The notes under the pieces: model-generated
The model's input: only the letters and a program-made list of their open reading frames with translations
What the model was told of the DNA's origin: nothing
Database searches by the model: none
DNA from: Styela clava
Taxonomy: Eukaryota
Direction: 5' to 3'
Assembly (NCBI RefSeq): GCF_964204865.1
Contig: NC_135251.1
Coordinates: 16,244,001 to 16,308,000, forward strand
DNA length: 64,000 nt
Shown: positions 54,768-62,365 of the stretch, one piece after another
How the letters are laid out: every line of letters starts with the position of its first letter
Numbering within the stretch: the stretch's first letter is position 1
Position numbers and translations under genes: made by a program

Positions 54768-57077
54768 ATGACATCAAGTTCCGAGTCCTCACCTGATGAT
54801 ACACCTCGTCCATCAAAGTTTGAAGACTTTGATTTTTTCGATTCTGACAAAGATGTAGGAGATGAGAAAAAAGTATCTAATACATCAAAATGGAGCGCAA
54901 AAACAGTAAATTCTTCTGAAAGAAATCTGCATGATGAACTTCATGGCAGTGGCATGAAGAATGATCAACTTGGTATGGGTGACCTGCATAAAAGTTATGA
55001 TTTATCTGAATCTGAACATAAAACAAGTAAAACTTATACTTCAAGTACAAAGGTACAGATCAAACAAATTTCTCAAACGACTACCAATTCTAAACGAAAA
55101 CCTAAAGAACAGTTAACCGTCCATGTTCCAGTTCAAGCGTCAATGAATAAGTATAATTCCTCGTCGAGTGACGACGATTCCTCAGGTTCTGTGACAGATG
55201 TTTCTCCCTTGCCATCACCAGATATTACACCGAGACCACGTACAATTCCCCATGATGAAGAAAGTTCACCAAACAAAAGAAACAAAATGAAAAAAGAAAC
55301 TAAAACGAAATTCACAATTAAAGAAAGTGGTATTGAAGATGGGGAACGTCCTCATGCTCGTCGCGCGAATGGAGAAACTTTATCTGTTGAAGATATTTTT
55401 TATTCTAGTGACGGCACCCCTTTAAGCAGTGGTGAAAGAGATACTCAAGCCATAAGAAGAAAACGAGTTCAGCGTAAAAAAAGGAGTCGCTATGAGGAAA
55501 TTCAACAAAGGATGGAGGCGTCATCTCGTCATCATCGGAGGAGATTATTAGATGTCGCAGCAGAAAATTCTATGGATTTAAGTCAATTACTGGAAGTGGT
55601 TTTAGAGATGGAGCAAGAAGAGAAAGCCAGGAGGATGTATCAAAGCCACAAAGCATCTAAAAGTGTTTTACCTCCCCCTTTGAAACCATCTCATAGAAAA
55701 AACATGTCCTTCTCCAATCAACAAGTTCGTGATATCGACTATGAAAATCAAAGATTGCTTCAGCGTTTAGCCCAACTTAACACTCGACAACGGCCATCTA
55801 GTGCTTCTAGTGTGAGATCATCTGCATCTTCTTATAGAAGTAATGCAAGCACAAGTAGAAGCAACAGAAGACCAGCAACAGCAAGGAGGTGGGTATGAGA
55901 AACGATCCATATGATATGGATCTTTCATTGTAATTTAAAGTATTTGTATTAAGCCAACACTGCGGAATATATCTACTTTTTGGGGTTATAAAACTTGGGA
56001 TGGGTGTATCACCTTAACTCATGCCATGTACTCGAAAGAAATTGGATAGTCACCGAATTTGAAAAATTTTGGTATTCCCTGATACCCTAAATTGCAGTAA
56101 CCACCGCTATTGCAGGACCTTGCTTGAAGCAAGGTGTTGGAGCACTCCATGAAGAATAATACCGTCATTATGCATTTCCAATCAGAGATAACCAAAACTG
56201 AATATTTACTATGATGAATACACTGTAAAGTATCATAGTATTTCTGAATAATTTCACTAAAGAACTCATAGAAGTCCATGTAAATTAAACAGTGATTTGA
56301 TTGGTTCACTTTTTTTTTAGTTTTCTAAAATTAAATGAGGGCAATTTTGGTCATAACTTTGAGATTTTGAATTTAATTATATTAGAATATTTCTGCGGTA
56401 TCGATATCAGCATTTCTGAGAGTCCGATATATTACGAGTGTTTTAAATTGATCGAAAATCAATTCAATTGGCGCCCGAATTACGGTGATTTGATATAACA
56501 TTGAAAGGCATCCTCAAATGTCTTTTTTAAAAAATCATTTGCTACTGATGCCTTGAATTATTATGAACTAAATATTGTATATAAAGCCTCGTAATCTGAC
56601 AAATATTATTTTATATATTCATTTGCGGCAGTATAACTCTCTATTGAACGTTCTATTTGAGCAAGTTTGTATCAGCAAACTATCTTACGATTGGATAATT
56701 CAATATCTGTATGATTTTTTTTTTTTTATATAATTTTTTTTGCAATATGTACCTAATACAAATCATGCATTAACAGACCATCCCCGGCACAAGGACCAAG
56801 GGTATATCACTCAGCTACAAACAGGATTCGTGACCAACAAAGGATTGAAAGAGAGAACCTGACAATTCTGAAAAGACTGCAATCAACAAAAGCAACTGGC
56901 ATTCTCAAAAGGGAAAATTTATTACGGGATTATGAGAGACAAACTGGTAGACCGGTTGAACCGGGACGACAGCGCAGAAGACCGAGATCTGGTCAAACAA
57001 GACAAGGGGATTATGAAAATGGGTCTATGCAATTTTCGCAAAGGAAGGCAAAACCAGTTTGGCAAGATTCTTGGTGA
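54768..57077 (+). CDS. CFAP97: Cilia- and flagella-associated protein 97-like (KIAA1430/hemingway family), ~473 aa
   Basis: Exons 54768-55888 and 56777-57077, phase 2. Conserved blocks VTDVSPL, KNMSFSNQQVRDIDYENQRLLQRL and YHSATNRIRDQQRIERENLTILKRL. Confidence 0.85.
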
Positions 57078-58789
57078 ACATTAACTGTTAATCTTGTTGA
57101 ATCGAGCTTTTAAATAGGTATATGTCTAGTAATATGGAAGTTCCCAATTTCTTACAAATCAAATTACTGGTGTTATCATCTCCCGTTTAATGATCATGAT
57201 AGATATTATCATTTTGTATTTTTAACATGCTGTTTTTAAATGGCCTCGTAAACAAACCCTCTCCCAAATGTGAAAAATTTGCTAGAATCAGATTACCTGA
57301 CAAGCATGTGGTGTACAGACAAGAGGATAATAATGTCATTCAAATATATTATGTATAATTTTAAATAAAGAGCATCTTTCACTTAGTTGATAATACCAAT
57401 TCAAAATCATAGGCAGCGATAAGTTTTATCATTTTTTTTGTATAATCAATTGAAAAGTCTTTTTTATTCCAATATTAGAGTAGAATAATAAACTCTGTTT
57501 TCCATTTTTTCACATTTTAATTGCTTTCGCATTGCATTTTTGTTTCTTCCAACTTTTATTTCGGTAACATGCAACACCAAATTAAATGACAAGAAAATGG
57601 AATTTTCTATTCGATGGATTGATATGTGTTTGACAATAGTTAAAAGTGATCTATTTACCTAGCAAAATGTTTTTATACCAATGCACTATGACTATATGAA
57701 TCTGAATATCTACAAAAATGCTACCGGAACAATATGAAAAATTCATGACTACATTTTTTCTATCCTTAATTTTACAAAATTCTATTCAGGCATTCCCCAT
57801 TATACTGAGAGATATTTGGAGCTTTATAATGTTCATAATTTTGGCAGATTCATTGAAATTTTCGAAGCCACCACCAGATAAGGAGTTTACATCCCTGAGA
57901 GCTGTAAATAATTTTCTGCATGCACTGTGTAATGGAGCAAAAGTAATATATTTTATTTGTTATAGTGATCTTCATAAACTAGTTGTTTAAATAAAACAAA
58001 ATCACAGATTGTGAATAGTGGTTATCTCTTCTGCAAAGGAATTAGAATGGTATGATAATTGCTAAGGTTACGACTTCTTCTTCATTTATAAACAGGCTTG
58101 TAGTGCGTTAGAGGTAGCCTCGTCATGACGTTTTTGCTGGTATTTCACTGCAAACTGTTTTCTTAAATGTTTTCTTAAAGAAGTATATGCCAAGTCCACG
58201 GGTCTCGGTATCCTGAATCTCCTTGTTACATATTCACAGGCAACTAAATAGTACAATTGTTGAGATTATATTTATTAGTAGTTCAACATGTATGATAAAA
58301 TAGGCACAATGTATTGTTAAAAAGGTGGCATATTGTTAAAGGAAAACTGCATTCATCACTCTATAAAACCAGACAGTAACTACTGACAAGAAAGAACAAT
58401 AACACAATTTGACGGGAAATTCTATCATTCATTAGTATTCAACACGTTCAGTATCCATATGAAGTCTCAGACGAATTTGAAAGTCAAATTGATATCGTTG
58501 ACCTTGCATATATTGATTTTTTTTAAATTGGTACATTACATGCGGTGCTTCAAAATGGCCACTGCTACCTGTGACAGGTAAATGTTGCTACATATACCAT
58601 TGAATCTGTGTGCAAAATAATTCATAATATTTTGTTTGTGCTAGATATGCCTTTGTTAATTTGGAAAATGAATATAAATATTCAAGCCAAATTGACATAA
58701 TGGGTGTAGGAGTGATGCCACTAAACCCCAGTCAGAATCCAGAAGCATAATATTCAATATAATCTACAAACAAGTTTTATTTATAAACA

Positions 58790-60070
58790 TTAATTCCACC
58801 AGAAACTTACAGAAAAGCTTTTATCTAGCGATCTAACATAATGCCAGTAACCAGGAGGTATATAAAGCATCTGGCCAGGCAGTAAAATACATTCTTCCCT
58901 ATGATTACGATCCATTTCAGTAAAAAGTGGAAAATTTGTATCATCTGGCTTTTCAACATCAACTTTTGATGTGTTGTTTAACATTCCCTCATGGGGGTAG
59001 AGAGCATTCTCATGTGAAGGATGATATAACCGTACATATTTACGTCCCGCAACTTGACATAACAGATTGTGTTTTTTGTCATAATGACATGGTGAAACAG
59101 TGCCACCAGGTCCAAACCAAGCATTTATTTCGGTATCAGTATCAGGGTCCCAATCTGGCATTTTTGAAATACAGCAATAATCTGGAATACATATGTCATT
59201 TCTAAGCAGTGGGATTTGATCAAAAAGTGTATGTTGTGCTAAATACGCTTTTGATGTACAATCATCATTAAATATATATTTTTGAATGAAATTTGAAATA
59301 GTCATTAATTTTTGACCCCAACTTTCATCAGTGTATTTAGCACCAAGTTCTACAGGTACAAGTCGGTGTCCTGCAATATTGTTAAGATACTGAAAATTCC
59401 ATTTAGCCATAGCAGGCCAATGATCAATGCAATCGCTAAGCACCATGGGAAGAGCATGGTTCATAAAATCTTGGAAAGAAATTAAAGATGGATTTGATAA
59501 GACTTTTATTGGATTATGTACTTCTGGATCTAGTTCATAATTTTCAGTGTTTTGGGTCTCAATATATTTCGGTTGGGCAGGTTTAAAAATTTTAATAATT
59601 TTGTGTAATATACCATTCATTACATTATGGCCCATTAGCAAGCCCATGTCAGAGACTCTACAAATTTCTATCAAATCGTCATCTGTTGTGGCATTATAGC
59701 CCAAACACGAAGCTTTGAAGACACAAGCAAATGAATATAGTTTTTGCCACACAAGCGGGACATTTTTCCAATGAAAAGAATTCAACTTTTCCCATGTTAA
59801 GTCTAGTATCATTTCTGCATTGTCAAGACATTTTTCAATATTGTTTTCATATAATAATGTGCAACATTCTTTTAAAATGAATAATGAGACATTGTCAATC
59901 TTATTGCAACATACATGGAGACATTGTACTATTGTATGCTCCATTTCTGAGTCTGTGCTAGGTAATGTTTGCTTAAGTTCAGATTTGCGAGTAGTAAAAT
60001 GTAGTATTGCTTTCGGAGATTCAAGGTTAATACTCTTTTCTGAGGTCAAGAGTTGGTCCACCATCTTCAT
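58790..60070 (-). CDS. KDM8: JmjC protein KDM8/JMJD5, intronless, ~426 aa
   Basis: [89 protein letters not shown]. First in-frame ATG is 60070 (alternatives 60064 and 59944). Confidence 0.95.
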
Positions 60071-60509
60071 AATTCCCTGTGATCTCAGCGTTACTGAAAT
60101 CGAATCCTGGATTTTCGAGTTCAAATCTTTCGAGAGTCAAATTTTTTTGCATTTGATCTTTCGTTAAAGGGTCTACAGCAAATTCTCCACCCTCAAATAA
60201 TGATGGCCAAAAACAATTTTCTTTCTTGCGACTGCGTTTCACAAGCAATATTCGGATTAATTTTTGATCTTCCACACTCCAAGTTGATTCGTCCACCAAT
60301 ATTCCTTGCGGTAGGGGGCTGTTAAATAATTCCTTCCCCCTCACAACGCAAGATAAATGCTGGGGTTCAATCACCACATTTACTTCTTTCCCCCTTGTCC
60401 CTTTCTCAACATCAACAACAACAACCACGTCCTGCACAGTTTGATACCAATTACCCCAGGGAGTCTTGCAACATGCAACACCGCTTCTTTCGTCGAAATC
60501 GCTATTCAT
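60027..60509 (-). CDS. NUDCD2: NudC domain-containing protein 2, intronless, ~160 aa
   Basis: [22 protein letters not shown]/p23 domain, and the conserved C-terminus [33 protein letters not shown]. Confidence 0.94.
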
Positions 60510-62365
60510 TTCAAAATGTAACTCCAAGTAAACGGAAAATTCTACGAGAATAAACCGCTCAACTAGTAGCAATCGCAACCATGTAACAAATGCTTTTCAC
60601 CGAATAGGCTATGATGAACTTATGCTAAAATCATGGTTAATTAACCATGCTAAAATCAATCCTCCACACAAGAGTTCCAGTGGTGGATAAGATTCTATGC
60701 GGAACGTCACCAATCTTCCGTAATTAGTGGGCAAGAATTTCCATTTTTCTAAATGTATTTTACAATCTGAGATTTCATTTTTCTTGTATTAACAATTGTG
60801 TAAATATATTTTTTGGCTACTACACGTTTTCTTGGATTGCATGATGTAACTACGGTATTTATTTCCGCTCAATCAATGACTATTACATGCTACTGAAAAT
60901 TTGCATCGTAATTTCACTGCGACGTGTTAATGTTATCGTCATCTTGAATGTGTTATAAGTTAGATCTAGGCTATATGATATCTCGTTTTCTCTGTTTTAC
61001 TGAAATTGTTTTCGATTTATATTTAGTCTACTGGGTACCGGTAAGCTGGCAAGGGCGACAGGTTCGCCATATGGTTAAGCCGTCTTATCGACTTTCCTCT
61101 TCCCGGGATAAATATGCAAATCTGCTCAGTTCAGCAGTTGGATGGCATTTTAGATTCATATGATAGGCGCTCCATAGTTATGTAATGTACGGTAACTATA
61201 TAATATAAGTAGGCCTACTGTTGTCATGAATCTCATAATTTACTGTGATAAATATTTTTTCAACGTGCAATAGTGAAATAGATGGACAGATTTGACAATT
61301 TTTGATACTCCAAACTCCAAAGTTTACTCTTTGTGCAGTCAATAATTTATTGCTAGAATAGAAATGGTTTCTGGATTATCGTAATTTAGTTCTGTAGTTT
61401 TGTTCCATCTTTGTCAAAAGTTCGTTAATAGGCTAATTCATATCTGCTTTAATTTATATATGTCTATTCCTGTACTGTTGTAGAAATATTTTTGTATAGA
61501 GTTGCAATGCAGTTCTAATTAGTTCTCATTTAAATCCTTGTCCGAATTTATGTTTATATCTCATAAAAGCGCCATGTGTACTCTTCTTTTTCTTCAATCA
61601 AATTAACTTAATAAATAAATTATATTACTGTTGTATCGTTACCTCCCAGTCATACTGTGAACTTTTGTTCCACTTATTTTGTTATTGAAATTTTTTATAT
61701 TATGTGTTTTGTTTGACGAAATAATAAATTCTCTCTTTTTTTATCACTGACTTATACTCCTGTGCTTACTCATCTGTAATTATTTACAGACTTTTTGATC
61801 CACAGACGTTTCGCCCCCTCAGACCATTCCAATCACTAGATGGCATATGGCGATTTGAGTTATGACTTTGACATGGCAGTTTTTTTAAATTATATTAAAT
61901 AAACACTCAAATATTTTAAGATTTAAGTGATTAAGGATATTTATCCACCACATTAGTGCCATATATGGGCAACCTGTGGCTTCTGTACAACCTTAACCCT
62001 GTAACCCCCTACCCATGCCCAAATTTCCTATGAATCCACATGTATTTTTAGGCAACTCCAATGCCAATGTATTATTAACAAAAAGATTAACTCAAACTGT
62101 CTTATTTGGCAGAAAAGTCTGTTGGGTGAAAAGTCTGTTTATCCCCTCACATATAATCACCTCCCATGGGATTTGAACCTGTTCAGGGTAATCAGAGATG
62201 CGATGGCTTACCATGATGCACCGACTGCCGAGCTGATTCTATTTTAATCCTAGTGGATAGGCAGATTTTGCATATGTTAACTATTGCATCGGGAAATCCT
62301 CAAGTCCTACAATTAATTACAACTGATTTCCCAAATTAATATTTGCAGATAATTTGGTTGTAATC
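60510..62365. promoter_or_regulatory. Probable bidirectional promoter region (NUDCD2-KDM8 / GOLGA4)
   Basis: Head-to-head arrangement; includes SINE fragments. Confidence 0.45.

Follow-up and report, generated by a model that had tools for sequence, protein, structure and literature searches.

A probable KDM8 start codon within the NUDCD2 coding sequence of Styela clava, in a putative two-gene tunicate operon

In a 64,000-nucleotide (nt) stretch of the Styela clava genome (assembly GCF_964204865.1, contig NC_135251.1, positions 16,244,001 to 16,308,000; hereafter the window, whose own numbering is used throughout), the genes for two conserved proteins, NUDCD2 and KDM8 (also JMJD5), follow each other on the minus strand and are read from higher to lower coordinates. 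With good probability, the KDM8 coding sequence begins at ATG 60064 or ATG 60070, inside the last 13–15 codons of NUDCD2 and in the +1 frame. A fuller reading takes the locus as a tunicate-type two-gene unit in which KDM8 starts inside NUDCD2 and its mRNA is made by trans-splicing within the NUDCD2 coding sequence; for this reading as a whole, we see the balance as even. A preliminary description, made from the DNA letters, had given the NUDCD2 stop codon, the ATGs, the 44-nt overlap and the two motifs TTTCAG 60099–60094 and CACAG 60081–60077, and all of its coordinates proved correct. The features are as follows.

60027–60509, minus strand: NUDCD2 coding sequence, the upstream cistron; single exon, 160 amino acids (aa) plus TAA (ATG 60509, TAA 60029–60027).
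58790–60070, minus strand: KDM8/JMJD5 coding sequence in its proposed long form, the downstream cistron; single exon, 426 aa from ATG 60070 or 424 aa from ATG 60064.
60137–60139, minus strand: TGA that closes the KDM8 frame upstream.
60027–60070, minus strand: proposed dual-coding overlap, 44 nt; the last 14 NUDCD2 codons and stop, and KDM8 residues 1–14 in the +1 frame.
60094–60099, minus strand: TTTCAG, the leading candidate for a trans-splice acceptor, within the NUDCD2 coding sequence, with no ATG between it and 60070.
60077–60081, minus strand: CACAG, second candidate acceptor, 6 nt before ATG 60070.
59945–60026, minus strand: KDM8 N-terminal extension between the NUDCD2 stop and Met 59944; encodes model helix 19–35 and a Leu-Pro motif (59965–59960).
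59947–59948, minus strand: AG two bases before Met 59944, the putative acceptor if the two cistrons abut.
59942–59944, minus strand: Met 59944, start of the public 384-aa model; an internal Leu/Phe column in most KDM8 proteins.
58271–58276, minus strand: AATAAA, at the probable 3′ terminus of the unit; 58270 is where one RNA-like contig stops.

The upstream open reading frame (ORF) encodes NUDCD2. It contains a p23-like CS domain (Pfam PF04969, expect value (E) 5.3e-14, residues 18–91), and the solved NUDCD2 structure 2rh0 aligns with residues 5–154 of the 160 (E 4.6e-48). Its homologues in the database search bear the name NUDCD2, and the public S. clava annotation has the same 160-aa NUDCD2-like protein. 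The 2rh0 alignment takes in the GNYEDGGP stretch, that is, the part of the NUDCD2 tail that carries the KDM8 start codons.

The downstream ORF encodes KDM8. Its frame, +1 relative to NUDCD2, is open from 60136, has ATGs at 60070, 60064 and next at 59944, and ends at the stop codon 58792–58790. Pfam matches are to Cupin_8 (1.8e-42), JmjC_2 (3.6e-12) and ARM_KDM8_N (PF24472, 4.9e-11), the last being the KDM8-type N-terminal helical, ARM-like domain; solved JMJD5 structures match at 7.6e-81. The metal triad His-x-Asp...His (H329, D331 and H410) is invariant in an alignment of 40 diverse KDM8 sequences. The public S. clava JMJD5-like protein (P0001) is 99% identical to the ORF and has 384 aa, the product expected from Met 59944. 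We think that this public model is probably truncated, being without 40–42 N-terminal residues that include the Leu-Pro motif and the first helix; by picking the downstream Met 59944, the annotation sidesteps the overlap. Pipelines that forbid coding overlap can be expected to repeat the same truncation in other ascidians. A similar truncation may affect the Clavelina model P0007 (394 aa), whose start falls at the column of Met 59944.

Four S. clava sequencing runs were compared with the locus, three RNA-like from three studies and one DNA-like, the RNA label being a guess that the depth pattern alone supports. In all three RNA-like runs the depth is high from about 58270 to about 61090 and near zero outside 58270–61200; in the DNA-like run it is even, at 12–20x. 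Each RNA-like run gives one contig over both ORFs with no joint (58348–61090, 58270–60586 and 58377–60509). These contigs confirm that NUDCD2 and KDM8 are intronless, and they agree with a common precursor, a contig across two genes being no proof of a single transcript. The 3′ end of the unit likely corresponds to the AATAAA at 58276–58271; a scan for AWTAAA across the window was at chance level and uninformative. The 5′ ends of the RNA-like contigs vary, one per study, among 60509 (the A of the NUDCD2 ATG), 60586 and 61090, which may mean that an outron is removed from NUDCD2 itself or may reflect only polymorphism (a 5-nt indel at 60605). Compared with the window, the runs have one difference in NUDCD2, Gln26Glu, and, in the KDM8 frame, 8 that are silent and 4 that replace a residue.

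The first line of evidence for the upstream KDM8 start is that the segment before Met 59944 looks like KDM8 protein. In an alignment of the long form with its 120 best homologues (121 proteins), the columns of residues 32–43 are occupied in nearly all sequences. Residues 36–37, encoded at 59965–59960, form a Leu-Pro motif with Leu in 105 of the 121 proteins and Pro in 115, and P37 is likewise near-invariant in the separate alignment of 40 diverse KDM8 sequences. The column of Met 59944 holds Leu in 64 proteins, Phe in 39 and Met in 10; since it is mostly Leu/Phe, Met 59944 corresponds to an internal hydrophobic position. An AlphaFold2 model of the long form, built on the KDM8 alignment, has a mean predicted local distance difference test score (pLDDT) of 91.5. 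Residues 1–11 are disordered in the model, and six confident helices lie within residues 19–146, the first being helix 19–35 (block pLDDT 93–98); the next, helix 40–57, begins before residue 43. On this model, a protein beginning at residue 43 would be without the first helix and would have the second one shortened.

Profile comparisons, each with 2000 shuffles, were made for the 28 residues that separate the NUDCD2 stop from Met 59944. When the S. clava extension is scored against a profile built from the four clade members more distant from it (described below), 6 of the 2000 shuffles reach its score; for the lemur KDM8 N-terminus against a profile of the six ascidian extensions, none does. 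The N-terminal signal is a short motif at a fixed position, not a long similarity. The preliminary description had preferred the upstream start to Met 59944 and had pointed to a likeness of the preceding segment to human KDM8; the Leu-Pro motif and the lemur N-terminus bear out that likeness, and the model helix and the relatives add their support to the start.

The second line of evidence comes from those relatives. Five KDM8 proteins from public run assemblies (P0002–P0006) are 53–69% identical to the long form and cover 98–100% of it. In a tree they group with S. clava, with a support of 99/97, to the exclusion of Ciona, Clavelina and three other tunicate-like sequences. In all six clade members the extension can be aligned and its KDM8 frame is open; at the column of Met 59944, P0003 and P0005 have Leu, without a nearby start. 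NUDCD2 and KDM8 homologues are recorded on contigs of identical size (2327, 2846, 10547, 3728, 2243 and 2297). We then applied a back-translation test, that is, whether one DNA can encode the NUDCD2 tail and stop and, in the +1 register, the KDM8 head. A fit is obtained for exactly five equal-sized-contig pairs, over 13, 13, 14 and 14 codons and over 8 codons for P0004. Cross pairs fail, save where NUDCD2 tails are identical and for the P0121 tail with the head of P0005, whose own NUDCD2 partner is not on record. By the same test, there is no overlap of at least five codons in the Ciona pair (P0159, P0012) nor in P0198/P0008. The latter pair is from a more distant tunicate-like source, has a shorter NUDCD2 and lies on the 2297-size contig; its genes seem linked, and the linkage may be older than the overlap. 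The overlap arrangement thus appears, from the protein sequences, to be common to a clade of ascidians, in answer to the question of conservation in relatives that the preliminary description had raised.

The position of the start codon is also informative. An ATG formed from GAT-GG (Asp-Gly), as at 60064, is found in three species; with P0003 and P0131, where the NUDCD2 tail is altered, an ATG is formed from AAT-GA at the position of 60070. That a start codon persists at shifting places while the tail changes favours initiation there and disfavours a frameshift fusion of the two proteins. The NUDCD2 tails of S. clava and its closest relative are identical proteins, and each of the five nucleotide differences inferred in the overlap alters KDM8 while being silent in NUDCD2. 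The evolution of the overlap is therefore that of NUDCD2 coding sequence; the KDM8 head is unconstrained, in agreement with the disorder that the model predicts for it. The locus illustrates how two unrelated, conserved proteins may share codons at little cost: one frame holds the NUDCD2 tail, which is constrained, and the other a KDM8 tail that is disordered and varies freely.

The best surviving alternative, unlikely in our judgement, is an abutting operon of the Ciona type. The NUDCD2 mRNA would end at AG 59948–59947, KDM8 would be trans-spliced there and start at Met 59944, and 60026–59947 would be the NUDCD2 3′ untranslated region. Junctions of this type are the rule in Ciona (PMC1488885), the intercistronic distance having a median of 1 bp (PMC7986045); AGs stand at 59959–59958, 59954–59953 and 59948–59947, just before Met 59944, and the public model uses this start. 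Further, a single codon of the extension, 59987–59989 (minus strand), carries two of the S. clava polymorphisms: all four runs differ there from the window by Arg to Cys, and one run has a silent change as well; the column of this codon is mostly gaps in other KDM8 proteins. The abutting arrangement would cost KDM8 its near-invariant Leu-Pro motif and helix 19–35 and would clip helix 40–57. Moreover, it would place the start at a position that is internal Leu or Phe elsewhere and is Leu in P0003 and P0005, and the extension is open and can be aligned in all six clade members.

If KDM8 starts in the overlap, the question becomes how that start is reached. The preliminary description named three options, trans-splicing, termination-reinitiation and a +1 frameshift. 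The two cistrons are on the same strand, and their coding sequences overlap by 44 nt from ATG 60070, or 38 nt from ATG 60064, to the last base of the NUDCD2 stop; an intergenic promoter has no room. Given the overlapping start, our analysis makes trans-splicing more likely than not the route. In Ciona, about half of the genes are trans-spliced and about 20% are in operons; these operons are mostly without intercistronic DNA, 60% of their 5′-most genes are single-exon, and 16 of 18 upstream cistrons lack AATAAA (PMC1488885, PMC2760879). In the styelid Botryllus, trans-splicing has been reported, as cited in PMC3691228. Trans-splicing is favoured because the S. clava locus has these operon traits: the first gene is single-exon, and a sequence scan finds no AATAAA or ATTAAA between 60384 and 59596, so that a canonical poly(A) signal after NUDCD2 is absent. 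Leaky scanning is unlikely because five ATGs (60509, 60474, 60412, 60379 and 60152) precede 60070 on a bicistronic RNA.

We propose the following. A two-gene intronless unit would extend from about 61100 to about 58260 on the minus strand, with NUDCD2 followed by KDM8. For the KDM8 mRNA, a spliced leader would be joined in trans to an unpaired acceptor that lies within the NUDCD2 coding sequence (60094 or 60077; range 60136–60071), TTTCAG 60099–60094 being the best-looking candidate. The overlap would encode only the disordered N-terminal tail of KDM8, and the next 28 codons would supply the first helix and the Leu-Pro motif. An NUDCD2 mRNA ending at that acceptor would lose its last 22 codons and stop; hence NUDCD2 would be read from uncut or differently ended RNAs, each precursor serving one gene. 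One precursor would thus give an intact NUDCD2 message or a KDM8 message, not both.

Coupled termination-reinitiation on an uncut bicistronic mRNA is the next alternative, and a rather doubtful one. Here ribosomes that finish at the NUDCD2 stop (60029–60027) would move back 35–41 nt to ATG 60064 or 60070. The geometry fits: as with the human examples in PMC3923131, the frame is +1 and a GAT-G Asp codon a short way ahead of the stop supplies the ATG. Contigs over both ORFs are abundant in the RNA-like runs, and no canonical poly(A) signal follows NUDCD2. However, where cellular mRNAs are known to use this route, efficiency is low (about 1/82, PMC3923131) and Asp-rich GAUGAU repeats are required, of which the S. 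clava overlap has none: there is a single GAUG, the tail has two Asp, and nothing resembles a termination upstream ribosome-binding site (TURBS). KDM8 is a conserved enzyme that needs reliable expression, and a general tunicate route for downstream cistrons already exists (PMC1488885).

An internal promoter, in or just upstream of the 3′ part of NUDCD2, would give a capped monocistronic KDM8 mRNA and make the two genes independent overlapping units. We regard this as improbable. Nothing supports it directly; it would need no special processing, and overlapping untranslated regions are known in compact tunicate genomes (bioRxiv 10.64898/2025.12.04.692336). Such a promoter would sit inside a strongly conserved coding sequence, and none of the three RNA-like runs has a separate contig starting there, which is a weak argument. 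Trans-splicing is also the simpler route in view of its frequency in Ciona. Finally, a +1 ribosomal frameshift joining the NUDCD2 CS domain to KDM8 in one polypeptide, an option in the preliminary description which has in its favour only that the KDM8 frame is open from 60136, can practically be set aside: the relatives retain overlap ATGs at different positions (GAT-GG or AAT-GA) though their NUDCD2 tails differ, no slippery motif was noticed, and no fusion is found among 4024 KDM8 homologues, of which the long P0115 and P0066 were considered as candidates and lack a CS domain.

Several points weigh against the proposed start and the proposed splicing. When the tail residues are kept and synonymous codons are chosen at random, an ATG with an open +1 frame arises in the NUDCD2 tail in 28–51% of trials per lineage; the overlap alone is therefore weak evidence, and the weight of the case is borne by the comparative data. 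As to those data, linkage in the relatives rests on equal-sized contigs and the back-translation fit, from proteins and not from the relatives' DNA, and the proteins come from an automatic gene caller that prefers upstream starts. The P0004 KDM8 (paired with P0123, contig 10547) is called from TTG, eight codons before the NUDCD2 stop, which suggests that this species has the overlap without an ATG and that a non-AUG or downstream start is possible there. The extension of S. clava is 42% identical to that of its closest relative, a pair that may be too close for this to prove constraint; against a profile of 105 non-tunicate KDM8 N-termini, the S. clava extension is not above its shuffles (557 of 2000 reach its score). 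The AG two bases before Met 59944 would make a textbook abutting junction of the Ciona type. The RNA-like data are assembled contigs and carry no leader, cap or poly(A) ends. Lastly, the exact Ciona leader 16-mer has two matches in the S. clava genome, neither followed by GT, as might arise by chance.

A search allowing two mismatches located an array, C3:24847563–24961794 (for example, 24870200–24872400), with more than 80 tandem copies of a 16-mer one base off the Ciona spliced leader. Every copy has, about 41 nt downstream, a tRNA gene whose variable arm is long, and the 16-mer can pair with a complementary stretch that lies just downstream of it. The array may represent the leader RNA gene of S. 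clava or be coincidental; we did not retain it as the leader gene, given the interleaved tRNA genes, an unremarkable fold (z −1.4) and a donor GT that needs a one-base shift. A second candidate, C2:2827969–2829600, was rejected, being a 66-bp satellite of at least 25 copies in which the start of the unit merely resembles the Ciona leader.

As for the surroundings, a 62-bp dispersed repeat lies at 61061–61122, about 550 nt upstream of NUDCD2, with a depth of about 1e5 in the DNA-like run. It has at least 1837 candidate copies at 93–97% identity on many chromosomes and in both orientations, and no Rfam match; the RNA-like contigs all break at it. Rfam gave no match anywhere in 58200–61500. On the opposite strand, an intronless ORF of 376 aa rich in Ser, Arg and Lys (54768–55898, plus strand) converges on the KDM8 3′ end. 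A neighbouring candidate operon is multi-exon.

Since 2006 tunicates have been known to possess operons that lack intercistronic DNA, and whether one precursor gives both mRNAs is the question on which the S. clava locus bears. Mutually exclusive maturation has been proposed for Ciona operons (Satou et al. 2006, PMC1488885; Satou et al. 2008, PMC2760879). With KDM8 starting in the overlap, no processing could free that start and leave NUDCD2 uncut; the locus would thus be a direct test of that model and a natural test case for operon splitting. It is tempting to extend the proposal to an obligatory either-or operon across the ascidian clade, with an acceptor inside the NUDCD2 coding sequence at which each KDM8 mRNA costs an NUDCD2 mRNA, or else with reinitiation on an uncut bicistronic mRNA, but we hold such a generalization to be a long shot. 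If the former were true, the ratio of NUDCD2 to KDM8 protein would be set by competition between 3′ end formation and trans-splicing; if the latter, a chordate would have a conserved pair of housekeeping proteins that its cells express by termination-reinitiation.

The arrangement has partial counterparts in several known systems. The remark in the preliminary description that overlaps of two conserved genes are rare in animals seems fair, though the setting is the known kind of tunicate operon (PMC1488885, PMC2760879), to which that description alluded only briefly. As in Ciona operons, the two genes are same-strand neighbours in a tunicate, the upstream gene is single-exon without an AATAAA after it, and here one RNA-like contig runs over both. 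In Ciona, however, the cistrons abut, the upstream poly(A) site is at the acceptor AG of the downstream gene, and the coding sequences do not overlap. At the S. clava locus KDM8 would begin 38–44 nt ahead of the NUDCD2 stop, so that the intercistronic distance, counted between coding sequences, would be negative. With KDM8 starting inside NUDCD2, the acceptor must lie in the upstream coding sequence, and an upstream mRNA ending there cannot stay intact. The SL1-type operons of Caenorhabditis (PMC1488885) likewise have no intercistronic spacer, and in them a given precursor is subject to competition between trans-splicing and formation of the upstream 3′ end; unlike the S. clava unit, their upstream cistron has a canonical AATAAA, and coding overlap is not described there. 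No report of coding overlap in tunicate operons was found in the open-access texts searched, and an earlier description is possible.

Human MOCS2, with a 77-bp overlap of MOCS2A and MOCS2B (PMC9607355), resembles the locus in that two conserved proteins are encoded in overlapping same-strand frames of one exon, the C-terminus of one over the N-terminus of the other. In contrast, the second MOCS2 frame is reached by leaky scanning, the first ORF being short, and the two products belong to a single enzyme as its subunits; in S. clava, five ATGs precede the second start, so that upstream AUGs are not few, and NUDCD2 and KDM8 have no known functional link. Cellular and pneumovirus termination-reinitiation (PMC3923131) shares with the locus a second ORF in +1 and an AUG from an Asp codon a few tens of nt before the first stop, but it depends on Asp-rich GAUGAU repeats or viral signals that are absent at the S. 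clava locus and has an output of about 1%. The closest known system is therefore the Ciona operon without intercistronic DNA, and human MOCS2 is the closest coding overlap of two conserved animal proteins.

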